Notes under the pieces: generated by a model
What the model saw: the letters and a program-made list of their open reading frames with translations, nothing else
The model's database searches: none
What the model was told of the DNA's origin: nothing
Assembly: GCA_946965045.2 (NCBI GenBank)
Contig: OX337234.1
Coordinates: forward strand, 3,596,001 to 3,660,000
Direction of reading: 5' to 3'
DNA length: 64,000 bases
Origin: Epithemia pelagica
Taxonomy: Eukaryota > Protista > Bacillariophyta
Position numbers and translations under genes: made by a program
Shown here: in pieces, positions 8,114 through 32,340 of the stretch
Layout of the letters: every line of letters starts with the position of its first letter
Numbering within the stretch: the stretch's first letter is position 1

Positions 8114-8895
8114 GGGATTGAATTGTTCGCCTCAATTCTCGTGTGTGGTTTCAATAGATTGCAACAACCAACAAAACCTCTCTGTTTCCCCTTGACCTTT
8201 CCCTTGACCTTTTCTAGTTTGAACCGTGTGAGTAGGATCCTGAGGAGAGCAATACCATCCAAGAGAAGAGAAGAAGATGATGATTCACTTCCGTTGCCAC
8301 ACGTTTTCTAATCACCTTGAAATATTGGAGAGAATCTTACAAGATCCCATCAAACGGAGTCGTCTAAAGTGGACATGAGATGATGATGGTGATGTAGAGT
8401 AGTTGGTTTCCCACTTTAGTGTCCTTTTGTCTTGGATGATACCTGCATAGGTAGAAATTCTCTAGACATGGGATTGAGGAACCGACAGTAAGACAAAGAA
8501 GAGACAGCAAACAGGGCTTCTTCATCGTCATCAGAGAGACAACGAGGTGAGAAATTGAGAAAGAAAGCGAAAAATGAGGACACAATTCACGTGCGTGGTG
8601 CTCCATAGTGCGACACGCGACTAAACCTGATCGAACAGCGACTGACTAGGGAATGGAAGATGGCAGACGATACGTGACCGCACTATGGTATAGAGTACGA
8701 CTAAGTATTTCATGCGGCTTTACATACACACCGCAACGCAACCACCACAATGGTTCCCCCCATCATCTGTTCATAATTGCGACTCCACGTTGTTGTTGTT
8801 CTTTCCGCTGGACCACGCTCGTCAAATGGATTGTGTGGCGCGGCCTTCTTCTTCTTCCCTCTCTCCAGCAAATAGACATTCTCGTCGTTGGATGG

Positions 8896-9861
<966 letters not shown>

Positions 9862-10365
9862 GTTTTGTTCCAATCAATTCAATGCAATGCAGCAGCAGAT
9901 GGGAACGTGTGTATTTCTCGATAGTGGATTGTTGACTGGCTGGAACAATCCACGGGACGACAACAAATATGATGGCTGTCGCTTCTCGAAAAAAAGAGGG
10001 GGATTCTTGTTGTGATTGATATATAATCAAAGCTCGTTGCCAGGTGCAAAAGTAGTCTATCCAAGATGATAGATCCACGACAATGCTTGCCTCTCTCTTG
10101 TCTTCCTTGGTCTTCGACACAATGGACTTGAACCTGCGACCAGTGACGAGCCAGCTCGATGGAGCGGCTGGCGTATCCGGTCGCGGATTTTGAAGAGTCA
10201 GAATGACGTCAGTCCATGGAGTATCTTTTCTCGTTTGGGGTGGTGTCACGCGCGCTCCATGTCCCACCGCCATCCACGGGAAAGATACGCTTCGACCGTT
10301 CCGGAGGAGCCATCACCATCACACTGGATCCTTTGAATTCGAATCCCAATCCGAATCCATCCACC

Positions 10366-12065
10366 ATGAAGTTTGTTGCCGCTACTCTTGCCGCTGCAAT
10401 TCTTTCCTCCCCCACCGAGGCCTGGTCCTCCTTGTCCATGAAGGCTGGTACGTTATATGATGTTGGTGTTGGCAGTTTGCTACTAGGATGGTGCATCAAT
10501 CATGTAGAAGAATATAGGACTTTTTGTTGGCCCAACGTGACTCTTCAAAAGACGCGTTGTCACTCGTTTTGGCTCACTGCGGACATGGGCATGTGTGTCT
10601 TGTGCTTGTTGTCATGGGAAAATATGATTTTCGTTTTCTGACATTCATTTGTCTTTTATGTCTTTTTTTTTGGAACCACACACTGTGCTTGCTGGACCAT
10701 TTTGGGGCGATTCCTCTCGACCATCTCTTGTGTGTGTGTGTGTGTCATAGAGGGACCCTCGTCGTCGCGTCGTGCCTTTTTTACGCAAGGAGCGGCGGCC
10801 GTGGGTGCTGTCGGTGCGGCCGTGGTAGCCAGTCAAACCCCGGCCCATGCCTACAGCCTTCCCGATCTCCCCTATGCCTTTGAAGCCTTGGAACCGGTAC
10901 GTGCAACGACGACAACGACAAGGTGTTGTGGAGCAAAACGCAAGATTTTGGAGGAGGATAAGTTGATTTGAGTGTAGACTCTAGTATGGTGGATGAGCGG
11001 AGTGTGTTCCTGGGGAGGTGGCACCTGTTGGAGCAATCGGCATTGTGCATTGGAAACTACCTAGATAGACTTCTCGATCTTGTTCTGTTGTTCACACGGC
11101 GGCTTCTAACTTGGTGCTTCTCTTTTGCGTGATATTTTCTTCTTTATGTTGTTGCATGGTTAACTCTTTTCTTGAATCGGAACAGTACATTGATGCTCCC
11201 ACCATGAAGATTCACCACGACAAGCATCATGCCACGTACGTGGCCAACATTAACAAGGCCACCGAAGGCAAGGACGCCGTCGCTGTCTTGGATTTGCAAG
11301 CTTCGGCCATTGAAGCCGGTGCGGCTGTCCGCAACAATGGCGGTGGTCATTACAATCATGCCTTTTTCTGGCAAGAAATGGCTCCGGCCGAGACGGCCAG
11401 CAAAACGGCTCCCTCTCCGCAATTGCAAGCCTTGATTGATTCCAGCTTTGGCAGTTTGGACGAACTCAAGGCGCAATTCGAGGCCCGTGCCGCACCCGGT
11501 GCTCTCTTTGGTTCGGGATGGGTGTGGATTTGCGTCAACCAAGCCGGAGATGCCTTGAAATTGGTCGGAACGCCCAATCAAGACAATCCGCTCATGAAGG
11601 GCGCCGTCCCCGGAGAAGATATCATGTTTCCCATTTTGGGACTCGATGTGTGGGAACATGCCTATTACCTCAAATACCAGAATCGGTACGTTCCACACGT
11701 TTTGTTCGGCGGATGAACCATGGCATGTCTATGTGCCTGGATCGTCTTTTTGGTTTCTCACTCCGTGTCGTTTTCCGGTCTGGATGGCGTGACTGTGATC
11801 GATCCCCCCTTGTTCCAATTGTGTTTCACACAGTCGACCTGAATACGTGAGCAACTGTAAGTACTGAGTTTCCCCGGTTTCATACGGACTGGACTGGTGA
11901 CTGACGTTTGATCTGGTTGCCTAAAATATGTTCTCTCTCTCTCTCTCTGTTTCCTATAATACTATCTCTACCTTTACAGGGTGGAATGTGGTGAATTGGG
12001 AAAAAGTGTCGGAAAATTGCGCCTACGTGGTCGAGAACCATGCCGGTGTGCCCGTCGAAGGATAA
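10366..12065 (+). CDS. sodA: Mn superoxide dismutase with signal peptide, short transit peptide and twin-arginine signal; exons 10366-10447, 10751-10896, 11186-11685, 11834-11856, 11980-12065
   Basis: LPDLPYAFEALEP, HHDKHH, NNGGGHYNH, PNQD and DVWEHAYY motifs; GGG/NQD are Mn-type signatures. All four GT-AG introns are phase-consistent. Confidence 0.93.
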
Positions 12066-12501
12066 AATCCATCACACACACACACGCTCTCCTTGGCACT
12101 CACAAATCTTCACGCTTTAGTAGTAATTACTCGCACCATGCGCGCGGAAGAATCCTCTAACATATAGAATCCCATTCCGTGCTCCGACAGTGACGTCTTA
12201 TGGCAGTGTCGATTCTATGACTTGTTCTTGGGGTCAGTCAAAAGACAACCATGTTTGGCATGCTGTCGGTAACTAGCAATACATCGAGACTAGCTAGGGG
12301 GATACAATTGATCAACAGACAAGCAAACATCGTTGGTAGAGGATTGAAATACTTCGAATGCTACGGTGTAGGTTGTCCATTGCAAACACAACAAATGAAA
12401 CATGATTGTGCCACTGCAGAGACAGGGGGCGAGTCAATCCTTGGTATTTCGTCGCCGCTCTCAGAAGGCTCTGTGGAGAGAGCAACCATGGAATACTGAT
12501 A

Positions 12502-13061
12502 CTACAATTCACCCTCTTCTCGAGTCGTCGTGGAGGAGGCATATTGTTGTCGTTCTCGTTCTCGTTCTCGTCGCGCATGGACGCGGACATCGCGTTCTCG
12601 TTCGCGTTGCAAAATACGATCAATTTCCGTGTCGTCCGGGACTTGTTGCAACATTTCCAATTTGCGAGTATACAATTCCACCTTGCGTTCCAAACTCGTC
12701 TTTTCCTCCGCATCCAAGACTCGCAACGAACTGGCATGTTCCGCCAATCGGGCCTGTGCATCCGACAACATGCTTTCCAATTGCGTGGCCCGACGTTTCC
12801 GATTTTCCATCACTTCTTGACGCTATATAGTAAGAGAACCATAAATGAAAAGAAAAGGAAGAATGCCATCATCCAAGCCGCACGTGATATGTTGAGGCAT
12901 TGAGAGGCCCAACACAACCAACCAAACAGAAAAGACTCCTGGCCACGTACCGCTTTTTCAATTTCCGATGGTGCGGCCCAAACTCCTCCAAGTGGTGATG
13001 CAATGAGGAGAGCCACGAATACGAAGAGGATGTGTTGCAAACTGACCAGTCGACGGTGCAT
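12502..13061 (-). CDS. Small secretory-pathway coiled-coil protein; exons 13061-12951 and 12822-12502; ends EEGEL
   Basis: Signal peptide MHRRLVSLQHILFVFVALLIASPLGGVWA. A phase-0 GTACGT...TATAG intron joins EKA|RQEV, followed by a charged helical region. Confidence 0.65.
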
Positions 13062-14556: not shown

Positions 14557-15061
14557 TATAGAGAGTTGCGCGGGTCCGTTCGAACGAACCTTCTTCCTAG
14601 CGACGGAGCAACGGGCGCTGGTTTTCAGTAAGGACTGTCCAACTCCAAACGACGCAGAACCACTGTTTGTCTAAGTATATAGGGTTGCATGGACATTCCA
14701 CATCCTTGTACGAGTACGTTGAATCTTTCACACTGTGTTTGGTTCGAACTGGATATGCCAATGGAAATGGCTCTACCACTGTCGCGACGACAACCGATAG
14801 AGGTAGATAGACAAAGCTATCGACGAAGCTATATGATAGCCATTCTCTTTCCTCGCATCGAATTGATGTTATTATCGTGTCGTAAGGTTACATATGTCTA
14901 TAGAGTCGTAATCTTCTGTCTATATGCGTAATAATCATTCAACACTCAAAGGAGCATGTCACTTTGATGGGTCGTGTCAATGAAAGGCGCTATGGTTTTC
15001 CGGGATTGGGCTTGTAGAATTACTCCATGACATAATACCCGACTCAAAGAGACATAGCCAT

Positions 15062-16446
15062 AAACCCTCGGTATCAGTGTCCACTGCTTAGCTGTTTTTT
15101 GTCTGTGCCACCTTTACAGGTTCCCAGGTGGACACAGACAGCATTTTTCGTTTTTCGTCTGTCTGTCTAACCATTAAAATTCCTCAGGGCTGAAGCAAGG
15201 CCAGCGTGCAAGTGACAGTTGACGGTTGGTGGTTGTCCTCGCCGGGTCACCACGATTCAAATTTGGGCATCCATCATCATCTCAACACCTGTCACAAAAA
15301 CCCAAAACCGAGCCAAATGCTTGACCATGACGGGGGTGAGGTGAGAACAATGGATGGATCATGCTGGACTGAACCGTTTCTCTCTATTGCTGCTTATTAC
15401 TTATCTTGTTGTCTCTTTTCCCTTTTTCTCACGCATCACTGCTTCAGCTGTCTTTCCTATTGTTCTTGCATGATCCTTTACTTTTGTCTCATTTCGTACG
15501 AGTAGATGACAAGCCGCCAGATGTCAACTGGAATATCTTTTCCTTGTCGTAATCGTTTGTTGTTTGATTGTTTTTTGGCTACTGTCATATGCTCTATAGG
15601 ATAGATTATTCTCTCTCGTCTCTCATCATAGCGTCATTCTCAATCATTTCTCAACGCTGTTGTTTTTGCATCAAATAGATGGGAAGCCATCTTGCCACAC
15701 CCTACTGACCAATTATCATATCCTACCTAGGTAGTCGACACAGAGTGCTCAAAGTGAGCGGTACAAGCTTGTGAGAGCTGTTCTGTTGTGTTTTCATAGC
15801 GAAACTGAGGGTCATCATCGTGCTCACAACAAAGAACAAAGCTGCAACGAATTCACCAATTCACAAGGCTCAAAAGTCTCATGGATGACAAGCACTGGCG
15901 TTCTACTACTAGTAAATAAACAAAAGAATGTCTAGAGTATAGAGTTTTTTTAATACAATCAAAGTTATGGCGCTCAGCAAAAACCAGTCATTTCTGTTCG
16001 ACAAGAATGAACAATGGCAAGTAATGAGCTGCCCAGCGACTAAACAGATGAGTAGCGTCTCCCACGAGCAGAGCAAACAAAAGTGGCAAGTGGCAGTGAG
16101 CATGAGTGATGTCATTGACAACATGGCAATTGGCAATGGATCAAGCTCACCTGGAAAGCCAGTAACATTCGTAAGTAGTAAGTACGATGTGCTTTGGCAA
16201 AAGAAAAGAGAATGTGAGCTTGCCCCGAATTATGCAACAACCAACCGTCATCCACCCAGGGGACGCTTGTTGGGCTTGCGTCCGTTTCAAACGTCGAAAA
16301 ATTCAGCTGGGCATGCGTGTCAATTTGTACTTTGATAATTTCTATTTGCATCAAAAGCGAAAAATGCTGTCTGTGTCCACATGGGAACCTGTGAAGGTGG
16401 CACAGACAAAAAACAGCTAAGCAGTGGACACTGATACCGAGGGTTT
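15062..16446. mobile_element. Non-autonomous DNA transposon, 1385 bp, with 89-bp TIRs
   Basis: 15062-15150 (aaaccctcggtatcagtgtcc...) is the reverse complement of 16358-16446 with 2 mismatches. No long ORF and no clean TSD found. Confidence 0.85.
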
Positions 16447-19345: not shown

Positions 19346-19595
19346 AATAAGATAGCCATCCTACCTTGTCGGCTAGCAGAGAGCTTAACGCATGTGCAGT
19401 TGTTCACGTCTTTCCGTTCTTTATCTCCTATCAATAAGATAGCCATCCTACATCCTGGCGGCTAGCCGATGTGCAGTTGTTGACGTCTTACCGTTCTTTA
19501 TCTCCTATCAACAAGATAGCCATCCTACATCCTGGCGGCTAGCAGAGGGCTTAACGCATGAGGAGTTGTTGACGTCTTACCGTTCCTTATCTCCG
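19346..19595. repeat. Three imperfect tandem repeats of 77-86 bp
   Basis: Unit starts aa(t/c)aagatagccatcctac recur at 19346, 19432 and 19509. Confidence 0.9.
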
Positions 19596-19662
19596 TTGTC
19601 CGTCCATAGTCCATAGTCCGAAATGCGAAAACATCCCATGTACGTGTCAGGGTTGTAAATCT

Positions 19663-19873
19663 ACTTTAATAGCCAGGTTGGGACGAGGAGGAGCTAGGGT
19701 GTGAGGAGTGGCTTAACTCCGAGAAGGGCAATAGCGACGAGGAGTGGACTGCCCCTGTGAGATCCGCGTAAGCGGATCGAGGGGGCAGTCCACGACGAGA
19801 AGCTATTGCCCGACGAGGAGTTAAGCCACGAGGAGCGCCCTGCGACGAGGAGTCCCCCGGGGCTATTAAAGTA
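19663..19873. other. Interrupted long palindrome/hairpin in the hAT left subterminal region
   Basis: Nested inverted arms tactttaatagcc, gtggcttaactcc, gggcaatagc, gtggactgcccc and gatccgc around a GTAA loop (19768-19771), separated by purine-rich GACGAG-type spacers. Confidence 0.9.
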
Positions 19874-20182
19874 TGTTAGCTTCCTTTGTCACGAGGAGTC
19901 GTGCGGGCGCACCCTAGGTAATTTTCGGTCTTCCTAAGTGATCGTTTATCTCTATCGATACTTAGTAATAGTTGGCCTATTTAGCTTTTTACATTCGCGC
20001 CGGTACAGTGTTAGTTAGGTATCTTGCTTGCGTGCTTGCGCACCTTATCCGATTGCTCGCGTTTCTCAATAAGCAACATACTGTCGTGCTTGCGCAACAA
20101 ATCCGATGGCTCGCATCTATCAAATAGGTACATACGACAAGTCGTGTTGTTTACATAGGCGTGACACAGGAATACATAGGTA

Positions 20183-20608
20183 ATGTCTATATATTACTTA
20201 GATCCCCCACCCCCCAACGGACATTCCCACGATAATCTCTCACAGACGACACATTTTGTGCAACAACAATGCAACAACATGATGAGAAAAGGAAGACAAC
20301 CGACCATGGTGACTCCTCCTCCTTCTGGTGGAGTTGCTCATGCTTCCAAACAGGTTGATTGTGGAGTCATAGACCTTTGCACCCCTCCTGATGTAATAGA
20401 TCTTTGTAGTTCGTCTTCGTCGTCTAGTTGCTCATCAGACTCTTCGGGCGAAACTCTCGTCTTTGTCACCAAGGACAATGCAACAGACGAATGGGATGGC
20501 AATCTCTTTCGCCGCTCGGAACTCTACCACGACTGTACTGGGTCATCCGACGACTTCAGCACCTGTAGTTCCGACCCTTGGATCATGGAAATCCTACAGA
20601 GACGGTAA
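20183..20608 (+). CDS. Small hypothetical protein with two VIDL SUMO-interacting-like motifs; may be spliced at gtaagt 20606
   Basis: 141-aa ORF containing GVIDLCTPPDVIDLCSSSSSSS. Confidence 0.4.
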   Translation: MSIYYLDPPPPNGHSHDNLSQTTHFVQQQCNNMMRKGRQPTMVTPPPSGGVAHASKQVDCGVIDLCTPPDVIDLCSSSSSSSCSSDSSGETLVFVTKDNATDEWDGNLFRRSELYHDCTGSSDDFSTCSSDPWIMEILQRR

Positions 20609-20839
20609 GTTTTCGCCGCGTTTCCCACCATTGTCGTGTGTTTTCGTTCCAGACGTCTTCCCAAAATTTCAAACCACCTGCCGTGCGCGCGCGCATGGTT
20701 GAGTCACTGTTCTGTTTCCTACTGATTCCTACGTGTAACCTACGTGTCCGCACTTTCTCGCAAGTGTCACCGTCTTCACTTTCCTCACCCTCATTTTTCA
20801 TTGTGCATCGTTTTTTCATCGTCGTTTCACAGCCTGACC

Positions 20840-23800
20840 ATGGCGACTCGACAATCTCGCCGCCAACTGGAGCGGGCGGCCGCAAGAAACAATATGGACG
20901 CCACAAACTCAACCAATAACGTGAACCCGTACCGAAATCCCGGCCGCCCACCCAACAACCGTGCCAATCGTCCGCCATTAACGGAAGTGAACCTTCCTCC
21001 TTCCCGAAATCCTCGTCGACAACCACAACAACAAGACAACATCCAAGCTACAGAGCAATCAAAGTAAGTGACAGTATGTTTTGTTTCTATTCTTATCTGT
21101 CTCATTCTAACCACCATGTTTCCTTTTTCCCTTCAGCAATGTTGCGAGGCCTGATCCTTCTTCCCGTCGTCACCAGATCGAAGGTCTCGATCTTCCCAAT
21201 GGCGCCAACGACGCCCTTCTCAACGCCGCAACGGTTGTGGAATCTTGCAAAGTGGATACCAAGCTTGTATCCCAAGCTTTGGTCAAACGGAAGCATCTGA
21301 CATGGGATGCCGAAAAGGGCTCCATGCGGATTGGTGAGGTCACCTTCAACCCGCCCACCATGAACTCTTCTCGTGCACGTTCGTTGGCCGCCTGGAGTCA
21401 ATATTGTCGTCTGTCTCCAACCATATACGGCAACAACACCTTCACCATCCGTGACCTCACTGGATGCAAGGCGTCATACGACAAAGAAAAGGCCGCCTCC
21501 GTCAACAAATTTTTGGAGTGTCTTCAAAAGCATCACGAGATGCACTTTCTTCTTGAAATCGTCGAAGATATCGATGAACTGTCGGGTGGAGATACACCAA
21601 CGCCGCTCCTCTTTCTTGCTCTCCGCGGAGTGAAGACTCCATCGAAATTGACATTGTTGAATAGTTGCGTAATGGTTTTTCTCGTGAACCATCGAATGCG
21701 GGGTTTCAATATGGAAACGGATTCGGTGGAGGACCCCAAGTTTTTCTTCCAGCCCAACACAACAATGAAGATGCTGAACCATCTCTTTGCTCTTCTTAAA
21801 ACACACGGGATCGTGATCGCTCAAAGTGATCTCAAACATGGGCTTGGCAATTACCATGCCTACCTTGCCGACATTTGGAACAAGGCAGCCCTCGTCCGAC
21901 CCGAATTTGGCCGCCTACCCAATCGTGCACCAACGGCATTCGACGACGAAGAAAAGATGCGGACATGCGAGCCGGAGCTTCGGCCGTTCGAAGACGGCGA
22001 GTATTCCACGGCTTTGAGCATGGGAGTCTACAAGACTTCCCGAGACTTCGGTCTCCGCGGCCCAGAAGTAAGTTGTTGTTTGTTGTTGTTGTATTTGTTG
22101 ATTGTCGCCGTTGTTGTTGCTGCTGTTGTCTAACAGTTTGGTTGTTGCATGTTGTCTCCAGATAAGACTACTTAAAGTATCCGATTTAATTTTCAAGGCG
22201 TGTCTTGACAAATCGTACGGAATGTTGGCTGGGCTTCCCGCGATTATTCTCAAAGAATCTGTGCTTGAGAAATCGTCGCACCTCGCGACGAACAATCTCG
22301 CCTTTGATCGAGTCGCCAACGATACACAAGACTCGTCGCACATGATCATCGACAACCCAGATGATAAGTTTGCGACGTACAAGATCCTCTTGCACATCAT
22401 GAAAGTGGCGCACCCGCCAGGATGGCAGGGTCTGCTGTTTCTAGAGCAGATACCCGCAAAACACCTCAAGGCCCGCAAGGATGGTGCGAAGCACCTCGGT
22501 TGGACTGAGCTCGTCCCCGAGACTTCACAGAATGACGCGGATGGATCTGGCTTCAAGTGTGCGGGTAGATTGGGCGTGAACTGGCCGTTGAGGAATGCCC
22601 GTCAACTTGCCATTCGTTGCAAGTTTGACAACGCCGAGAAGGTGACGTTCCGGACCGGCCGACGCACCGGAATCTCGAACGTTGCCAACTGTGGAGTACC
22701 ACAGAAGTCGTCGAACTCCTTCGCCCGTCACAAGTCAAGTGAGGTCAACGTACTGTACCAGGACGTCTCGAAAGAAAATCATGTTCGGACCGTCACGGCC
22801 AACTGGTACCGTCCACCCGAAAAGAGCGACGAGGCCGACAAAGAAAACACGAAGAATGGTACGTAGACTCATTGCATGAATCACTCTTTATACTTTGTTA
22901 CTAACTACTCTGCTATTATGTTTAGATGAGAAGGGATCCAAGAAGAAAGAGTCAAAAACCGCTTCATCCCCCTCGTCCTCGTCGTCGTCCTCCACCGACA
23001 TTGAGGCCTTTATGAAAAAGGCCAAGAAGAAGATTCGCCGTCGCAAGGCGTTGCAGCAGCTCAAGGCTGCCAAGAAACAGAATGACGATTCGTCCATCGA
23101 AGACGAGGATTCATTGGCGCGAATCCTTCGTCTCTTGGACGACAAACCATCCAAGTCGTCCAAGTCGCAAACCCATGGTAAGTTGATTGTTGCTTTGTTG
23201 TTTTCTTGGTTGCATCGATCTCATTCCGTCTTCTCTTGACCACAGACACCAAATCCAAGAAAAAACGCAAGAAGAAGAAGAAGAAGAGTAAGTCGATCGC
23301 GGACTCATCATCATCGTCATCTTCATCGGATGGCATGCTTGAAGTTCTTTCCCGATGTCAAAAGAAAAAGAAAACTTCTCCGCCCTCTACCATCGTTGGT
23401 ACGTAGATTGTTTTGTTTTGTTTTGTTTGATTGTTGCTTTATATGTTCTCACTGCCATTCCCTGTTTCATCACCTTCGTCCACTCCAGTGGCTTCTTCAA
23501 AGCCTCCTCCACCACCTCCAGTCGAGCATGAAGCGCCACAACCGCCACCACCAGTCGTTGTACCACCACCAACAACAACAACAACAACAACAACCACGGT
23601 GGCCGTGCAACCACCACCAGCTACGTCAACAATGGACCAACATGCACCACCTCCAAACAGTGCAACAGTCCAAGCACCAACAACAACCACCGTAACAGCC
23701 ATGAAACAACCTCCACTGCCATCTACTGTTACGGCCACGCATCCACACCCAACAGCAACGACTGAGCAACAGCCACCACCACCACCACCACCACCACCAA

Positions 23801-24342
23801 CCATTGCGACCACGGAACCAACGGTATCCGCTGCAGCTCCACCAGCCATTGCGACCACATCAACGTCGCAACCACCTCCACCACCACCAACCATTGCGAC
23901 CACGGAACTGCCACCACCACCCACAAATGTGCCATCGTCAACGGCCCTTGTTCCGACGGAACACCACACCAGCCACCACAATCCCTCTCAGAATCATCAC
24001 GGTGGATATCATCGCAATGACGGTAGTCGAGACCGCGGGGTTGATTGTCGTGTGGAGGAGCACCATCGTGTTGCTTATCATCGCAACAACTGGTACTCCC
24101 CACCTCCACCACCATCCGACTCGCCGCCATATCATCCTCATCATCATTCCCACCACCATTCTTCCCGAGGATACCACCACCGCCCGTACACTCCATCGCC
24201 ACCACCCCCACCGTACTACCGTGACCACATCCACCACCGTGGTGGTGGATACACTCCACCACCTCCACATCATCATCATCATCACCATCATCGTGGTTCG
24301 CGTTACCATGGCGGTAGCCATGGATACGGCTACCACTATTGA
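20840..24342 (+). CDS. Tyrosine recombinase (Crypton/DUF3504-like), 6 exons: 20840-21063, 21137-22067, 22162-22858, 22926-23177, 23246-23398, 23489-24342; 1036 aa
   Basis: Box I FGLRGPE|IRLLKVSDL is joined across an intron; box II is TFRTGRRTG...ARHKS...VLYQ. All five GT-AG introns are phase-consistent. Lys-rich, then Pro/Thr- and His/Pro-rich tail. Confidence 0.85.
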
Positions 24343-24843
24343 AGTACCATAGTATTCGGTACGTTTGCTGTTGTTGTTGCATTCTTGTTGATTGCTGTAT
24401 CATTGTTCTTACCCCTTTATTCACTCTTTTTGACAGATTGATGTCGCTATTGCTCTTTGCATGACCATTTGGGTGGTGGTCTCTAGCTTGACGTCTCGAA
24501 AGGTACGTGAGAATTAGATGATGACACTTGTTCCGCGTTCCACTCCACGTTACGTACCAGTTTCTCACACGTTCACGATTTTTGTAATTCTGTCTTGGCA
24601 TGAAATTTCGTGGTGCATCTCTTTGCTACTGAATTTTCCGTGTCGTGTGAAAACTCGTCTGTGTCGTGTTTCAATTATTGCCTACATTTTGATTATTGTT
24701 TTTTGGTCTCTGTGTTTCCGTTGCTGTTGCTGGTGCTTGCTGCTTGATTCGTGTGGTGTTTGTTTGTTGTGCTCTTCTTTTTTCCGTTGGTGCACCTCTT
24801 GTTCGCTTTGTGCTCTTTCCCGTATTCTCTCCCTGTGGATTTC

Positions 24844-24894
24844 CTGGGTGTACTACTTTTCTGGGTGTACTACTTTCCTGGGTGTACTACTTTT
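24844..24894. repeat. 3 x 17-bp tandem repeat ctgggtgtactacttt(t/c)
   Basis: Read directly from the sequence. Confidence 0.95.
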
Positions 24895-24937
24895 TCATTT
24901 TGGGCTATTCTAATTTTATACACTAAAATAAAAATCC

Positions 24938-25392
24938 AAGTACAGTAATTTTTAGGGCTTATGTAGTGTGGGTAGCGTTTTGGGAAAGGTACGACGACGA
25001 GTGGTGAAGGTAGTGAAGTACGCACACTCACACCTTGTACTTGACTACTAGTCCTTAAGTACACTAAAACTAGTAGCTGTTACTTTACTCTTATTACTTT
25101 AAGTACGTCTAATGAAAGCATGTACTTTTCTTGTGATACTTACAAGATTAGTCGTCTGTGCTGATTAATTAGCGTACTTAACTTAAGATAAGTAAGTGCA
25201 ACAATCTAACCAGACTTACTTTACTAAGCAAAAGTATCTGTTGCCGATACTGTGCTGGTACTTTAATATCAACAAGTACCACATCATGAGAGTTTCCCTC
25301 GCCTTACTTACTCCAAGTAAGTACCTTGCTGTCTAACCCAAAGTACTTAATTTATAACATTAAGTACGTACTTTCAAGTAATCAAAGTACCT
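24938..25392. repeat. Cluster of AAGTAC subterminal-type motifs (hAT left side)
   Basis: About 9 AAGTAC copies in AT-rich non-coding DNA; these are the reverse complement of the GTACTT motifs at the right end. Confidence 0.75.
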
Positions 25393-25554
25393 ACTTCACG
25401 CATCAATTTATCTCTTACCTGTTACAGTCTGTTACATACTACTGCTCTCCAAGGTACAAGTGCAGCGTTCAGTGCAGTGCATAGTGCATCCTGTGTTCCT
25501 TGCCCAATTCCAATCCCATTTTCCAATCCAAGTAATGAGACATCCCCATTCACC

Positions 25555-27282
25555 ATGTCGATGGATTCTCTCATAGAGGACAATTCTCTTCTGCAATTCA
25601 CATCAACCTGTCACATCGAGTGGTCTCTGTCATGCTGTGACTCATATTCTCTTTTCATTGCGGACAGTATTACTTCATGCATTCTGGCTCCGCACGAGGA
25701 ACAATTACATGCGGTTGTTACTGCCTCTGCCTCCTGGCTGAACCGTAATCAGCATTCGATAAAACTTCTTACTCTCTCGGAATGTCAAGCAAGTCACCAT
25801 TGTATTATACCCAGATTTTCTTTCGAACAACTCCTTTTTCAAGTTAGCTCCCTTATTCTCCAATGGCTCAATGGAACAGACGAACACAACCTTATTTCCA
25901 TCACATCACATGACGAAACAACCGATCTTTATCTTGAAGTAAAATGCACACCGAAGTTCTCAATCTCCCCATGTATGGGTTGTTCCCAGTGCACCTCCTT
26001 TGTCATTGACGAAATCAAGGAATATCCCGACGACTCTTTGCTGAGTATTGTTCTTGCATGGATACAGCGCAATCAAGCCCAATTCGTTGTCACTGATACC
26101 CTAACAGGTGCCTCCACTGTTCCCAACTCAATTGAAATGGTAATGGAAATTTTACTGAATTATATATCGGAAAAGATAACTCAATTACCGACTCCACCAG
26201 ACCCCCTAAACACACCACCCGTGTCCATCCAAGATGTATCCAAAAAAGCCTCTGACGATTCCACCACATCCTCATTATCTCAATCCACGAACTCTGTGCA
26301 GAATACGAAAACATCTTCTCCTAAAAAGCTCAGTCCATCCCGCCACAAGTACCAAACTCGGAAACAGAATGCTTTACTTTCGAGAGAAATCATTCTTGGG
26401 TCAAAATCTCGCAACAAAGTACAATACAATGATGGGAAAGGACCACGTCGGTTCATGCATGGCGACCCATTCAAAATATCCCCAAGTCGCATTACATGCC
26501 CGAATTTACCACTCCGGCCATCCGCAACAACTATCGCAGATCGAGAAGCTTTCCTTGACAAACTACAAGCCTTCCACAACGTGCTTAAAAGTTCTGGACT
26601 CCATTCTCCTCGTGATGCCTGGGAAGAATGGATGGACATGGTGGCAGGTGATGACAAACTAGCGGACAAGGCCTTCATGTGTCTCATAATCATTCTTATG
26701 AGCTTGAGTACAACAGACAGTCAATTAGCGGCATTCATTCCCAAAATATTCTCTGCCGGTGTTACCTCCGCTGATGGTGTTCTCGAAGTGGTAGATCGCA
26801 TTGGAATTGACCCCTTTTGTGCACTAATTTCTCCAGTTGGCCGTTTCCATCAAAATGCCGAAAGGATTGTCCATTCGGCATCGTACTTTGTCACCAGATA
26901 TAACGGCAGAATCCCCAGCGACATATCCATACGAGAGTTGACCTCCTTGTTTGGAATTGGATACAAGACAGCACAAATTGTTGTATCCACTGCATTTGAC
27001 CGAATAGATGGCATCCCATCTGACGTCCATGTTATGCGTTGGTGCGAGGCACTGAAATGGACACCGCCACTTTCAAACGACGGTCTACTCTGTTCGAAGT
27101 GCATAGAACAATGGCTGCCTCCATCAAAATGGGGAATAATCAATCCCCTGTTTGGTGGAATTGGTCAGCTGATACAAAATCCGGAAAAACGTCCGCAATT
27201 GCTAGCATTATTGGACGAGAACGGCTCTGACATGCTACAATCTACGATTCGCCCGGTTCTGAAAGCTTACGGTAAATACTAA
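25555..27282 (+). CDS. HhH-GPD superfamily DNA glycosylase, endonuclease III (Nth)-like, without FeS cluster, with long N-terminal extension
   Basis: C-terminal domain with LTSLFGIGYKTAQIVV (HhH, catalytic Lys) and GIPSDVHV (catalytic Asp). There is no Cys-x6-Cys-x2-Cys-x5-Cys motif. Confidence 0.88.
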   Translation: MSMDSLIEDNSLLQFTSTCHIEWSLSCCDSYSLFIADSITSCILAPHEEQLHAVVTASASWLNRNQHSIKLLTLSECQASHHCIIPRFSFEQLLFQVSSLILQWLNGTDEHNLISITSHDETTDLYLEVKCTPKFSISPCMGCSQCTSFVIDEIKEYPDDSLLSIVLAWIQRNQAQFVVTDTLTGASTVPNSIEMVMEILLNYISEKITQLPTPPDPLNTPPVSIQDVSKKASDDSTTSSLSQSTNSVQNTKTSSPKKLSPSRHKYQTRKQNALLSREIILGSKSRNKVQYNDGKGPRRFMHGDPFKISPSRITCPNLPLRPSATTIADREAFLDKLQAFHNVLKSSGLHSPRDAWEEWMDMVAGDDKLADKAFMCLIIILMSLSTTDSQLAAFIPKIFSAGVTSADGVLEVVDRIGIDPFCALISPVGRFHQNAERIVHSASYFVTRYNGRIPSDISIRELTSLFGIGYKTAQIVVSTAFDRIDGIPSDVHVMRWCEALKWTPPLSNDGLLCSKCIEQWLPPSKWGIINPLFGGIGQLIQNPEKRPQLLALLDENGSDMLQSTIRPVLKAYGKY

Positions 27283-27328
27283 GTTGGTTGAATGTTCATT
27301 AAAAGACTACTTTAGTTCTTCACTGGTG

Positions 27329-30300
27329 TCAATGGTTTTCCTCGTCGTCTTCATTGGTCTCCTCATCGTCCTCATTGGAGTCGTCGTCTCCCACCTCCTC
27401 TTCTTCTGCCTCCTCATTGGCATCCTGGAACTCCTCTTCTTCCTCTTCATCCTCATTCCCATCATGCTCTGAATTTTCATCTTTATCGTTATCTGACAAG
27501 GCATCAAGCAATCTACGAGAGAAGTTGCTCTCTTTTTCCATATTGTCCGATTGTTCATCGCTCCGACCTGATTGAGTCGATCGTTGTTTGTTCTCTTTCT
27601 TCTTCTTCTGTCTAGGAGACCGCCTCAATTCTTCGCTTCCTGATGACCTTTTTCTCGGTGGTGGTGGATTTGTCTTCTTTGTCGTTGACTTGGAACTGGA
27701 TGTTGTTCTAATTTTGGACTGCTTGGCCTTCTTCTGACTCGAAGTTGTTGGTGTTTGGTTAGCCTTCCTCTTCTTCTTTGACCCAGATTCAGATCCTGCC
27801 GTATCGTCCTTTTTTTGGCTCATCGCTTTTCTCTTTCGTTCCTCGACTGCTTGTTTCCTTGATCTTTCTAGTGATTCAAGACGGTCCATTTCTTCCTGTA
27901 GATGAACTGTGATGGCTTCATCTGTGTCGATGTCTTCTTCGACATCACTTTCCTCATTGTGATCACTGACATCAGACAAGTCCAATGATACTGGCTGTAT
28001 GTTGTCTGCTGGCATCGGTACTGCGTCGTCGTTGTTGTCGTCTCCCAAGTCTGGATAGTACTCGTATACAGGTTCCGGTGTGCTACTTGCGAGAATATCG
28101 GTCGGCGGATTTTTCTTTGCGTTGAAATCTTCCAATTCTTTAGTCGCTTCCTTCAACAACATGTTCCTCAGATATTCTGCCTGCTCTGTGTTCTCGAACA
28201 AGTGTGGAGCCCGCTTCTTGCCAGGACCCGAGTGTGCTTCTGCCCCGACTTCTGTCAACTGCGGACTTGTTGCATCTGGATTGTGTTCGTCCCCTACCGT
28301 AGGTGCTTCATTCGCTGTTGTGTTTGTACCTGTGGCATCTTGCCTTGTTGTTGCTTGGTTGTCTCCCCCCTCTCGCGAGTCGTTTCCGATCGTTACATTC
28401 GTAGTATTGCCATTGTTATCGTCGTCTTCGTCGTCCTCAATGACAATCACATCTTGTTCCTTCTTTTGATTTTCTAAGGCAATCTCCCTTTGAACAATAT
28501 CCAATCGGATTTTTCGTGTCAGCTTCTCCATCGCCCTCATCTCGAAGTTCTTGGCGGTAGTTTTGGTCTGCAACTTGTTTTGTTGAAACCACGAACCAAG
28601 GGAAAACACACGCTCTTGGAAGGCGTTTGTGGCGGGCTTCGTGAGCCATATGACAGCTGTTGGGAAGACATGTTGGTAGTTGTCCTTGTTTTTCTCCCAC
28701 CATCCCATGACGTCGAAATACTTTCCCACAACAAGGAAATCAGTATCTTGGCATGCCGCAATGAACTGGGCTTTTTCCGGCCCTTTCCATTTCTTGGACT
28801 CGGTAGTGTATGCCTCAGTAGGGTATTTAGTGATCGCCTCTTGCCATCGACCATCGATTTCTCTTTTACATGCACGACGGAAATCTCGGAGACTATCTTC
28901 GCATGTTTGTCTCAAGACCTTGGCCACACGGGCTTCTTCCTCAGCAGCAGACGCCTTACCAGTAATGTTCAATAATGCTCTCTCGTTCAGTTCCTGAGAT
29001 TCTCGAAAGTTGCGGAAAGCATTGAACTTTTTGAACGGTACATTTGCAGTTGGAAGAGAGTTGGTCGCTTGAGTCGTATTGCTTTGGGTTGTAGGAGTGC
29101 TGCTCTGTTGTTGTGTTGCCATCAACGAACCAATTCTGGAGTACGACTTGTTCGAGAATTTTTTGATCATGTCCCTGAGAAAAAGTTCCTTCACACGGGC
29201 GCCATCGTTCTGATCATACACTCCCAATGATTGGAAGAACTTAACAAAGATGTTTGTCATCAATGGATGGGCCATAAGAGCCTTTTCGGAGTCATCATTG
29301 ATGGAACCACCATCGTCGCGGACTCTACGCCGTTCTGCCAACAAGGTCTTGAACTCAGCAATGATACGTCGAATAAGAGTCCGTGGACCTGCTTTCAACT
29401 CCCCAAAAGACATGGGATCCCGTTGGCGATCTAATTGGGAAATGGTTATGTCTCCATTCCATCGTTTGTTGACTGGTGTTGTAAGTTTCACTGGAAGACA
29501 ACCAATGGAATTGACTGTATTCTTCATTCGATGAGCATAAGACCGGGCGAGATAAATTTGCATTAGGGCAGCGGAAGAGGATCCTGGTTCGTCGGACTGA
29601 ATGGAGATGGAAACCTCCTGTAGTACGACCAAGATTGCCTCGTATTGGGCCAGTGTTTCCCATTGTTCCTGCTGTGGATAACTCTCTTTGAAGTCAGGGT
29701 CGGTCCCAAAGTGACGTGAGGCGTAGTCGTCAAAGCACCATTTGTTCCTCAACAAATACTGGATGGTAAGCACACATCCAGAAACACGTGTTTCATTAGG
29801 TAGCGGAATCTGGACTACGCTTTGGTTCATACGTTCCATTTCTGTGCGAACAGTATCAAACCGGTGGTTTGCCTTCTTGGACATCAACCACGCTGCAAAT
29901 TTTTTGAATTCTGAGTACAGCTCCTCAAAAGCCTTGTTGTCGTCCACCACTCTCTTATCTCTCGTCCGGACAACCAACCCTGTGGCGTGTTTCAAGACCA
30001 ATTCGGCCTTATGCATGTCGCATTTGCCCACATTGGACGAACCCGTTATATATTTCCCTGCAAGCACAGCCGAAGCCGTGTTGTCGTTGACGGACGAGCA
30101 GAGATCACTTTTGTGAAAGCCCACTGTCTGTAGTAAAGAGTGAGTCAGTCGCGCAACTTGTACAGCAGTGTGACCTTTAGTCTGTGCCAAACCAATTGGG
30201 ATGCGATACACGGCACAATTGCGAGGATCACAGAACATGACAGTGACCCCAAGTACATCGTACTTCTTAGCCTGCCACACATCATGGCATACAGTGGCGA

Positions 30301-31183
30301 AAGGGATTTCCTGTCGGCAAACCTTTTTGTAGTGTTGCCGGACACGATAGGAAAGCTTGGACACTGTTCTGATGAAATCTTGATACGAAGCAACACGCAT
30401 GGATGTTACTTTGCGACGACTGATCACCTCAGGCCTGGATTCACGAAGAAGATTCGCATTTTTGATAGCAAAGTCGATCATCTTGCGGAACTCTGGCTTC
30501 TCCACAATAGAAGCGGGTAGGCAACAGTCGTTGACACACTGGTATGTGTGTTGCTGCATTTGTTGTCGAATGTTTCTCTTCGTGATCATTCCAGATCCAT
30601 CGCCACGATACATCGTCATTGTCGTTTGCGTCGGACTAGGTTGTTCTGGTTCGTTCGGATCGTCCTTTGTTCCTGGGATGACGAAGTCTTTGTGCTTTCC
30701 GTCAGTATGCTGTTTTATATTGGAGGGCTTGCCGGTCAGCATGACAACTGCATTAGACAATGGAGTCTCGGGGTCCTTCATACACAACGGGCATAGAACA
30801 CATCGCTTGGCAATGAAGGAAAACGGAGTTTTGTAGTCGGCCTTGTTAGGAAACTTCTTTGCTGCTGAGGCTTGTTCTTTTTGGGCAGCCTTGAAAGCTT
30901 CGTTGATGCGTTGGAAACCTTTATACATGGTCAAATTCTGTGGATCGTGAGAACTCACAAAGGCCGAGAACTGTACCCAGTCAATGTGGACAGCAAATTT
31001 CCAAAGGGGCGACACATTGTGATGTCCAAAGTGGTCGGAAGGTAGCTCTTGACATTTGGGAACAATCTCCTTTTCTTGTAGGATGAACGACCGGAGAGAC
31101 TTCTGTTGTGCAGCAATTACTTTCTCCGATTTCTTTCTCTCAGCATCACGGTCAGCTTTCTTTTTCTTTTGACGGATGGGCAT
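27329..31183 (-). CDS. hAT-family transposase, 1284 aa, uninterrupted
   Basis: BED-like CPLC...QHTDGKH, CHDVW (D), VNDNTAS (D), CDMH (CxxH), and a dimerisation domain WWEKN...PATNAFQERVFS (E). Long acidic/basic tail. Confidence 0.93.
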   Translation of the reverse strand: MPIRQKKKKADRDAERKKSEKVIAAQQKSLRSFILQEKEIVPKCQELPSDHFGHHNVSPLWKFAVHIDWVQFSAFVSSHDPQNLTMYKGFQRINEAFKAAQKEQASAAKKFPNKADYKTPFSFIAKRCVLCPLCMKDPETPLSNAVVMLTGKPSNIKQHTDGKHKDFVIPGTKDDPNEPEQPSPTQTTMTMYRGDGSGMITKRNIRQQMQQHTYQCVNDCCLPASIVEKPEFRKMIDFAIKNANLLRESRPEVISRRKVTSMRVASYQDFIRTVSKLSYRVRQHYKKVCRQEIPFATVCHDVWQAKKYDVLGVTVMFCDPRNCAVYRIPIGLAQTKGHTAVQVARLTHSLLQTVGFHKSDLCSSVNDNTASAVLAGKYITGSSNVGKCDMHKAELVLKHATGLVVRTRDKRVVDDNKAFEELYSEFKKFAAWLMSKKANHRFDTVRTEMERMNQSVVQIPLPNETRVSGCVLTIQYLLRNKWCFDDYASRHFGTDPDFKESYPQQEQWETLAQYEAILVVLQEVSISIQSDEPGSSSAALMQIYLARSYAHRMKNTVNSIGCLPVKLTTPVNKRWNGDITISQLDRQRDPMSFGELKAGPRTLIRRIIAEFKTLLAERRRVRDDGGSINDDSEKALMAHPLMTNIFVKFFQSLGVYDQNDGARVKELFLRDMIKKFSNKSYSRIGSLMATQQQSSTPTTQSNTTQATNSLPTANVPFKKFNAFRNFRESQELNERALLNITGKASAAEEEARVAKVLRQTCEDSLRDFRRACKREIDGRWQEAITKYPTEAYTTESKKWKGPEKAQFIAACQDTDFLVVGKYFDVMGWWEKNKDNYQHVFPTAVIWLTKPATNAFQERVFSLGSWFQQNKLQTKTTAKNFEMRAMEKLTRKIRLDIVQREIALENQKKEQDVIVIEDDEDDDNNGNTTNVTIGNDSREGGDNQATTRQDATGTNTTANEAPTVGDEHNPDATSPQLTEVGAEAHSGPGKKRAPHLFENTEQAEYLRNMLLKEATKELEDFNAKKNPPTDILASSTPEPVYEYYPDLGDDNNDDAVPMPADNIQPVSLDLSDVSDHNEESDVEEDIDTDEAITVHLQEEMDRLESLERSRKQAVEERKRKAMSQKKDDTAGSESGSKKKRKANQTPTTSSQKKAKQSKIRTTSSSKSTTKKTNPPPPRKRSSGSEELRRSPRQKKKKENKQRSTQSGRSDEQSDNMEKESNFSRRLLDALSDNDKDENSEHDGNEDEEEEEEFQDANEEAEEEEVGDDDSNEDDEETNEDDEENH

Positions 31184-31195
31184 GATGATATAATG

Positions 31196-31377
31196 ATTGA
31201 AGGAAGCACTGATGGACAAGAGAGACTTGTTGCTGTTGTTGTAGATTATGAGAGGACAACAAGTTACAAGGGACCGAGAGGCAACAATTGAAGGAAGCAC
31301 TGATGGACAAGAGAGACTTGTTGCTGTTGTTGTAGATTATGAGAGGACAACAAGTTACAAGGGACCGAGAGGCAACA
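31196..31377. repeat. Exact 2 x 91-bp tandem duplication just upstream of the hAT transposase start
   Basis: attgaaggaagcactgatggac...ggcaaca occurs at 31196 and 31287. Confidence 0.95.
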
Positions 31378-31482
31378 ACATTCATCCATGTTGGCATGAG
31401 ACATGGATTGAAAGATATAGGTGCAAGCGATTTTGGAGATGAATGAGAGAGTGGAGAGGCTACTTGCTCCATACTGTGATGT

Positions 31483-31810
31483 ACTTATGGACTTAGAAGT
31501 AGATATATACAAATAATAGTACTTACCGATAGAGCTTTAAGTACGAAGAGAGGAGCTAAGGTACTTGATAGGGGTACTTTAGGTGCCGGTGAGGAGTAAT
31601 GGTACTTGATAAGGGTACTTAAAGGATGAGGGTGAGGGAAGTGGTACTTCATTAAGGGTACTTAAGGTGGAAAAAAAAAGAGACGGTACTTGATGAAGAA
31701 GGCCTTGCAAAAAGTAAAGGAATTGGTATTGATCGAAGGGACTTGGACAAAGGCAAAGGCAAAAGTACTGAAAAAGTACCGTTTTGGCGAAAAATGGGTA
31801 CTTGGTACTT
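31483..31810. repeat. GGTACTT subterminal repeats at the hAT right end
   Basis: About 9 GGTACTT copies between the transposase 5' region and the TIR. Confidence 0.85.
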
Positions 31811-32340
31811 CACAACCCTGGTACGTGTACCGGGGAAAGAGCCCTGAGACAAACAATAAACATGCGCCATAGACCTAGGTGTAGGATAAAAAATGTCATG
31901 TCATTTCACTACACGACACTGATACGATATCACATTGATGTCATACTGCGACACGCACTATACCTAGTCCCGGACGACAGATCACGGGAATTTTGCACGG
32001 GGGGAATGATCTCCAACCTTCAAAGAATTATACTCGCCAGGACATAGTACAAGTAATCATAAGTCTAACATAGGCTCTAGGACTCTAGGAGCATTCAATA
32101 CTGAATATAACAGAGGAAGCATTTGAGATCATCAAACATCTGACATCCTACGCCATAGACGCATCTTACAACTGACGGTGGCTTTGAATCATCCCTTCTT
32201 GGATGGGCAGCCGTCAAGAATGAAAAAACTGAGCTTTTCAATAGGGGCTCACGAAATAGAAGGCAGAAATATGATTGGGTTAGAAAACTCACAAGACATA
32301 GACAAGACATCAAAATACTTAACGAAAACTCACACAAGAC

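Follow-up and report, generated by a model that had tools for sequence, protein, structure and literature searches.

A probable Crypton-type DNA transposon with defined ends and an arginine in the His-II slot of its tyrosine recombinase in the diatom Epithemia pelagica

Of the classes of eukaryotic DNA transposons, Cryptons are the one least understood; where they end is usually uncertain, and the circle model of their movement is based on analogy. We know of no Crypton that has been shown experimentally to move. The present work concerns a probable element of this type, which lies with its intron-containing recombinase gene in a 64,000-nucleotide stretch of the diatom Epithemia pelagica (assembly GCA_946965045.2, contig OX337234.1, positions 3,596,001 to 3,660,000). 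This whole stretch is called the window, and coordinates refer to it unless another locus is named. Cryptons, as described, have short terminal direct repeats and no terminal inverted repeats (PMC3212892). The CryptonS group has been reported from oomycetes and the diatom Phaeodactylum (Kojima and Jurka 2011, PMC3212892; citing Goodwin et al. 2003), and the majority of its members, but not all, possess TATGG termini (PMC3212892).

The segment 19656-25013 is very probably a Crypton-type DNA transposon that is autonomous and has moved recently, an assignment for which the named Crypton groups were compared by description only. A first-pass annotation made from the sequence alone had pointed to the gene in its centre as a possibly active, atypical Crypton-like tyrosine recombinase (YR). 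This proposal is supported by exact ends shared by many copies, empty sites, insertion without target duplication, non-autonomous partners, a modelled fold and a conserved catalytic set, and the recombinase is possibly active. The mobile unit is larger than the gene alone:

19656-25013, plus strand: mobile element of 5,358 bp, TAAATCTAC...GGTGAAGGTAG, delimited by blastn against five other copies.

Exons 2 and 3 of the gene were searched against the organism's own genome (60.5 Mb, 23 contigs), which yielded 38-40 protein matches, six of them at about 100% identity, three older copies at 83-90% and about 25 diverged paralogs at 30-59%. The six young copies are 98.4-99.6% identical by blastn, are situated at unrelated loci and have common end bases. 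A blastn comparison of 20 kb around eight copies gives 19652-25013 as the shared unit, that is, the element plus the tetranucleotide on its left. Every copy begins with ...GT(A/T)G directly followed by TAAATCTACTTTAATAGCC and finishes with ...GGTGAAGGTAG. The recombinase exons are the only conserved coding sequence within the 5,358 bp. Their reading frames are fully open in five of the six young copies, and length differences are confined to the low-complexity tail; in the remaining young copy (C11), 13 nt are inserted in exon 6. Segmental duplication as the origin of the copies was considered and rejected in view of the identical ends at unrelated loci. An older copy, C6 (G000:C6, about 2265755-2272477), is 6.7 kb long; close to its 3' end, it has about 1.3 kb of additional inserted sequence, which is related to window 15060-16445.

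The element inserts directly 3' of a target GTNG and without target duplication, because the left tetranucleotide is the target's own in both insertions for which an empty site was found. Such an insertion fits conservative site-specific recombination and not the action of a DDE transposase. Over ten insertions, the left core is GTTG in four, GTAG in four and GTCG in two (G-T-N-G in 10/10), and the right end is always GTAG; in two copies, GGTAG is present on both sides. In the window, the target is the left end of a hAT transposon:

19652-19655, no strand assigned: target GTTG, part of the interrupted hAT inverted repeat and left partner of the GTNG...GTAG microhomology.
25014-25021, no strand assigned: second half of the interrupted hAT left inverted repeat (TGAAGTAC), which together with 19648-19655 restores the 16-bp CAGGGTTGTGAAGTAC.

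The hAT transposon is flanked by 8-bp duplications (GTACGTGT at 19640-47 and 31821-28). Its left end reads CAGGGTTG, followed by the Crypton-type element, and its right inverted repeat occupies 31805-31820, the reverse complement of which is CAGGGTTGTGAAGTAC. Excising 19656-25013 in silico regenerates the 16-bp hAT inverted repeat and yields the empty site CAGGGTTG/TGAAGTAC..., where the slash indicates the point of insertion. The reconstructed 29-mer of this site was found exactly at four other loci and with one or two mismatches at four more, and the reversed control gave 0. The second empty site belongs to L037, a further copy from another public assembly that is 98.1% identical and lies within a different repeat. 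The empty site predicted for it contains one GTCG and matches one locus exactly and four with two mismatches, again with 0 in the control.

The recombinase gene is predicted to consist of six exons:

20840-21063, plus strand: exon 1, encoding a basic N-terminus (MATRQSRRQ...); the N-termini of relatives start alike.
21137-22067, plus strand: exon 2, core-binding (SAM-like) domain and start of the catalytic domain, closing with Arg-I (22056-58) and Glu-I (22065-67).
22162-22858, plus strand: exon 3, the remaining catalytic domain with Lys, R-T-G-R, His-III and Tyr.
22926-23177, plus strand: exon 4, Lys/Ser-rich and resembling a nuclear localisation signal (phase check; dN/dS 0.16-0.38).
23246-23398, plus strand: exon 5, poly-Lys and Ser-rich.
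23489-24342, plus strand: exon 6, low-complexity tail, Pro/Thr-rich and then His/Tyr/Gly-rich, with the stop codon at 24340-42.

The predicted protein is thus composed of a core-binding domain, a catalytic domain (end of exon 2 and exon 3), a Lys-rich stretch and a low-complexity Pro/His/Tyr tail. When the exons are joined, 3111 nt result, equal to 1036 codons and a stop, with 0 internal stops in a manual and a scripted check. All five introns are of the GT..AG type with gtaagt or gtacgt donors, and their phases (2, 0, 1, 1, 1 in order) are mutually consistent. The six-exon, five-intron, 1036-aa model of the first-pass annotation is therefore correct in its recomputed coordinates, phases and GT-AG borders. 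The same holds for its description of a tail of about 450 aa rich in Lys, Pro/Thr and His (here His/Tyr/Gly), and for the positions of R 22056-58 (in GLRGPE), RTGR 22651-62, H 22729-31 and Y 22756-58, which were verified on the sequence. Two further catalytic residues were located, namely Glu at 22065-67 and the conserved beta-hairpin Lys at 22270-72. As a prediction, the six-exon reading frame is far beyond chance, identical frames being open in five of six near-identical copies and dN/dS being low. Exon 6 varies in length among copies in multiples of three, with C11 as the exception, and a tail of similar composition is found in the paralog L020 and in a transcript-derived protein of Entomoneis.

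The intron after Glu-I occupies a position common to paralogs of 42-59% identity, and several metagenomic relatives read through it in frame (E followed by V...). The joining of GLRGPE to IRLLK, on which the six-exon model depends, has transcript-level support in a relative, as the Entomoneis transcriptome protein runs contiguously across that point (...YRSKE-MLTLV...). Contigs of the organism's DNA-like sequencing runs retain the introns and are devoid of splice joints. A joint 23166/23252 was considered as the splice of intron 4 and rejected; it is a length variant of another copy.

The relationship of the protein to tyrosine recombinases was investigated by profile and structure. A profile (A1) combined the exons of the window gene with two open read-through copies and with the diverged paralogs L010 and L020, the only two such paralogs that entered the alignments. 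Against 1.84 billion representatives, it gave 404 matches at E up to 1e-3, mostly exon-sized pieces. Among 20 matches that were looked up, the only ones with an organism name are from Entomoneis paludosa (MMETSP1065 transcriptome) and Cylindrotheca fusiformis, and the nearest clusters of an Atlas search fall in the Bacillariophyta, in keeping with a pennate diatom as host. In a 75-row alignment of the catalytic region (A2), Arg-I is conserved in 22/22 members, Lys in 43/45, Arg-II in 55/59, His-III in 57/59 and Tyr in 58/60. Five of the six catalytic residues of tyrosine recombinases are thus present and conserved, and the sixth, His-II, is replaced by Arg in 55/61. The spacings of 23 residues from Arg-II to His-III and nine from His-III to Tyr are those of Cre, Xer and lambda Int. 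In the PDB, the profile matches a single protein, the tyrosine recombinase XerA (E 0.034), with RsaRR aligned on HvlRH and RH on GH. Searches with the two families suggested by the first-pass annotation had a divided outcome: Phage_integrase (PF00589) appears in 14 of the 75 members (best E 1.6e-4) with no other family near, but below threshold, its curated cut-off not being reached, and DUF3504 (PF12012) appears in 0/75. The element's protein is recognised by neither.

An AlphaFold model of the Entomoneis member, calculated with A2, has a pLDDT of 89.2 and a pTM of 0.85, and its catalytic domain shows the fold of the Cre/Int/Xer type. The catalytic domain of the window protein was not modelled as one piece because intron 2 splits it. 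Exon 2 of the window was modelled and gives the core-binding (SAM-like) N-terminal domain. Both models fit a tyrosine recombinase, the fold on which the earlier proposal hinged. By their offsets in the model, the family's Tyr, His, Arg-II and first Arg would fall on Cre Y324, W315, R292 and H289, which places the first Arg of R-x-x-R in the His-II position. Between subfamilies, dN/dS is 0.06-0.10 for exon 2, 0.10-0.14 for exon 3 and 0.16-0.45 for the tail exons 4-6, and the enzyme exons are by this measure under strong purifying selection.

The R-x-x-R in place of H-x-x-R, first noticed in the single window copy, is real and constitutes a signature of the whole family. Among tyrosine recombinases, the His-II slot, the catalytic position with the lowest conservation, is occupied by His in 87%, Tyr in 7% and Gln in 1% (Gibb et al. 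2010, PMC2943603). Arg is absent among the natural variants listed there. In Cre, most substitutions of His289 are tolerated, but not Asp, Glu, Lys, Arg or Trp, and the His289Arg and His289Lys proteins are inactive in vivo and in vitro (PMC2943603). In view of these variant frequencies and of the Cre mutagenesis, a family-wide Arg combined with recent movement is unexpected. A contact of the Arg with a neighbouring phosphate is conceivable, similar to that made by Lys220 of poxvirus topoisomerase IB, where a Lys three residues ahead of Arg-II is directed at the +1 phosphate (PMC2943603). By analogy, the family-wide Arg suggests a local geometry nearer to that of the topoisomerase; the Arg would have to be compatible with catalysis in this family. 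The likeness is limited to how the Arg might be accommodated: type IB topoisomerases, poxviral or nuclear, are without Glu-I, are immobile and perform no strand exchange between partners.

The same Cre data and the absence of Arg among the listed natural variants also favour the best-surviving alternative, in which the protein is catalytically dead through its His-II Arg and is kept as a DNA-binding factor, the copies being relics or having been spread by another enzyme. This is improbable. Apart from His-II, the catalytic residues, the Tyr nucleophile among them, are retained by at least 90% of the members, and dN/dS in exons 2 and 3 is as low as 0.06-0.14. Identity among the youngest copies is 99.6%, their frames are intact and they are inserted precisely, without duplication. 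All of the approximately 38 genomic paralogs found are members of this one family, and no HxxR partner was seen among them.

Tyrosine recombinases are also carried by retroelements of the DIRS, Ngaro and PAT types, and the structural matches of the N-terminal domain include ALOG, a domain derived from DIRS-type elements. Copying via RNA, by a YR retroelement of such a type that has no reverse transcriptase of its own, is nevertheless very unlikely. Domain searches of the 5,358-bp element returned no reverse transcriptase, RNase H, methyltransferase or DDE transposase, and a repeat scan detected no terminal inverted repeats, long terminal repeats or split direct repeats within it. All introns are in place, at the same positions, in all copies, which argues against passage through a spliced RNA.

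The first-pass annotation had also offered a domesticated, DUF3504-like gene, which would be an immobile host gene family descended from an ancient Crypton. This option was discarded as having next to no likelihood. Genes of the DUF3504 type (ZMYM2-4, QRICH1, KCTD1, KIAA1958) are single-copy genes of the host in which the catalytic Tyr, Arg-II and His-III have been lost (PMC3212892), whereas the element's gene keeps these residues, is multicopy and is mobile. Six near-identical copies with identical ends at unrelated loci, short derivatives and empty sites contradict domestication, as do the 0 of 75 DUF3504 matches. Finally, it is scarcely conceivable that the gene is cargo of a 12-kb hAT transposon (19648-31820), for although it lies between the hAT inverted repeats and 8-bp duplications, and a 1323-aa minus-strand open reading frame (ORF) at 27332-31300 carries a hAT dimerisation domain, the other five copies comprise 19652-25013 only and no hAT, other hAT copies have an uninterrupted left end, and the element splits the 16-bp inverted repeat, whose restoration upon excision, together with the intact empty site at other loci, means that the element inserted into the hAT end.

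Compared with described systems, the element resembles Cryptons in having a tyrosine recombinase as its only enzyme, introns in the gene, neither terminal inverted nor long terminal repeats, and a 4-5 bp direct repeat at its ends without target duplication. With CryptonS, it shares a stramenopile host and a low copy number. It possesses non-autonomous derivatives, which for Cryptons were earlier reported only from Rhodnius. It departs from Cryptons as described, which are without structured ends, by a 212-nt iteron-bearing rod palindrome at its 5' end, and from CryptonS as described by its family-wide RxxR site. Unlike Cre, Xer and lambda Int, it has Arg for His-II, a change that inactivates Cre (PMC2943603), an additional tail of about 450 aa, and a eukaryotic, intron-containing gene. 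Its recombination core is apparently a 4-nt microhomology with a free third base, which also sets it apart from these enzymes.

Several observations weigh against a Crypton-type element with a working recombinase. Since His289Arg abolishes recombination in Cre, the Arg in the His-II slot could, by analogy, mean altered or reduced chemistry. Pfam returned no match for the window exons taken one by one, nor for a 593-aa open read-through copy; phmmer against PDB sequences had no match, and two word-indexed protein searches yielded nothing or the query alone. The catalytic model represents a relative only 31-33% identical and not the window protein itself. Instead of the TATGG of most CryptonS, the element has GTNG...GTAG at its ends (GGTAG in two copies). 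The organism's sequencing runs comprise three DNA-like runs and one metagenome and include no RNA run, so that splicing and expression are predicted. The contigs of the DNA-like runs contain no joint of the element's end to its start, and neither a circle junction nor an excision footprint was observed in them.

Short relatives of the element accompany the full-length copies. The 5' 340 bp of the element occur at 40 or more genomic places, about 30 of them at 90-95% identity. At these approximately 30 loci, the last 95 bp or so of the element follow 0.7-1 kb downstream, and the loci are, judged by their sequence, short non-autonomous derivatives that keep only the element ends. Read depth, which is about seven times higher over the 5' end than over the body, agrees with this interpretation. 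In three of the six young copies, the element stands head-to-tail with a resident short relative, with a single GTAG between the two. The tandem partners are 92-95% identical; because they thus differ by 5-8%, the tandems represent insertion beside a resident end and not tandem duplication.

Both ends of the element contain features that may serve its recombinase:

19662-19873, plus strand: rod-like imperfect palindrome of about 212 nt, starting 6 nt from the 5' end, with inner arms at 19708-19755 and 19782-19829.
19683-19899, plus strand: six direct copies of ACGAGGAG(T), candidate recombinase-binding iterons, all on the plus strand and within 217 bp.
24837-24894, plus strand: three tandem 17-nt repeats (TTTCCTGGGTGTACTAC) in the 3' non-coding part, from a repeat scan.
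24994-25013, plus strand: 3' terminus ACGACGAGTGGTGAAGGTAG, containing the iteron-like ACGACGAGT and the invariant GTAG at 25010-13.

As DNA, the palindrome has a folding energy of -66.6 kcal/mol (z -11.1). Its stems are broken by purine-rich loops, which fail to pair because both arms carry one motif on the same strand. A pattern scan for ACGAGGAG(T) counted 33 matches in the window against 13.2 expected. The iteron region is 90-95% identical in the non-autonomous derivatives. The related ACGACGAGT sits 12 nt from the 3' end; the 3' terminus itself did not differ in any full-length or non-autonomous copy seen. All nine copies of the E. pelagica genome have the inner part of the palindrome in one orientation and L037 has it in the opposite one, which could be due to recombination between the palindrome arms; L037:3487-3608 is 96.7% identical to window 19708-19829 in reverse and about 74% forward.

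The first 1.2 kb of the element are 94-96% identical between subfamilies in which dS of exon 2 exceeds 1. This points to a sequence-level constraint or to an exchange of ends between subfamilies. A mosaic of this kind is apparent in the comparison with C17b, C6 and C3: the 5' 1.2 kb and exon 4 with its adjoining introns are 94-97% identical between subfamilies, and exons 1-3 only 73-84% (dS 0.7-2.2). In addition, exon 2 of C10a contains a patch of 14 synonymous differences and one non-synonymous difference. The mosaic divergence and this patch suggest exchange between subfamilies.

These features can be combined into a possible cycle. The recombinase would bind the iteron-studded palindrome at the 5' end as well as the 3' end of the element. 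The flanking GTNG would be joined with the terminal GTAG, releasing a circle with the junction GTAG/TAAATC (...GAAGGTAG/TAAATCTAC...). The circle junction might then recombine either with a GTNG at another site or with its identical counterpart at the left end of an element already resident. Tandems with a single GTAG are the outcome expected from the latter event, although as evidence they are indirect.

Going beyond the assignment to the Crypton type, the element may tentatively be regarded as a member of an undescribed, diatom-wide lineage of YR transposons, a reading that we consider possible but somewhat less probable than not. The enzyme of this lineage would have no His-II and, like type IB topoisomerases, a basic residue three before Arg-II, and its site would be the 4-nt GTNG microhomology beside a long iteron-bearing rod palindrome. 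Members of the family in public protein sets are unannotated ("hypothetical protein") and invisible to Pfam, and the family has therefore probably been overlooked in diatom genome annotations. The element supplies exact ends, two reconstructed empty sites, the GTNG rule, short derivatives as possible substrates and intact source copies. If the interpretation is true, the element would be the first of the Crypton type for which the ends are fully defined and a target rule, helper-dependent derivatives and structured cis sites are known, and the first usable as an experimental system. A family-wide His-II Arg in a recently moved element conflicts with the prediction from Cre mutagenesis, and the family would thereby offer a natural test of the flexibility of the YR active site and of its closeness to type IB topoisomerases.

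The gene may extend further upstream than the six exons:

20183-20604, plus strand: possible exon 0, a 141-aa N-terminal extension with a phase-2 GTAAG donor at 20605; the ATG at 20840 shares the frame of the acceptor AG at 20831-32.

With this seventh exon, whose existence appears possible from the sequence, the gene would have 7 exons and 3540 nt and encode 1179 aa. In a 42%-identical paralog, the donor is of the same phase, an acceptor likewise lies in frame and a motif is conserved, and the Cylindrotheca and Entomoneis proteins have in-frame extensions ahead of M-x-TRQ. Against exon 0 stands its broken frame in two older copies, C17b and C6, in which the six-exon frame is itself open or almost open. 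Divergence in the region is too low for an informative dN/dS.

Some minor observations concern the sequences into which the element has inserted. Once the nested element is removed, the hAT transposon (19640-19655 plus 25014-31828) measures about 6.8 kb, and at least eight other intact left ends of it are present in the genome. Besides the ORF with the dimerisation domain, it includes a 601-aa ORF at 25477-27279 on the plus strand, with no Pfam match at E up to 0.01. The host sequence of L037 (L037:1-3430 and 8752-12621) is a repeat with six or more copies of 98% identity in the E. pelagica genome; it has a 1014-aa ORF with a weak Exo_endo_phos match and probably represents a LINE-like element. 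Immediately upstream of the hAT transposon, at window 19400-19594, direct repeats of 70-90 nt with 92-94% identity are found, 19400-19469 pairing with 19477-19546 and 19469-19505 with 19558-19594.

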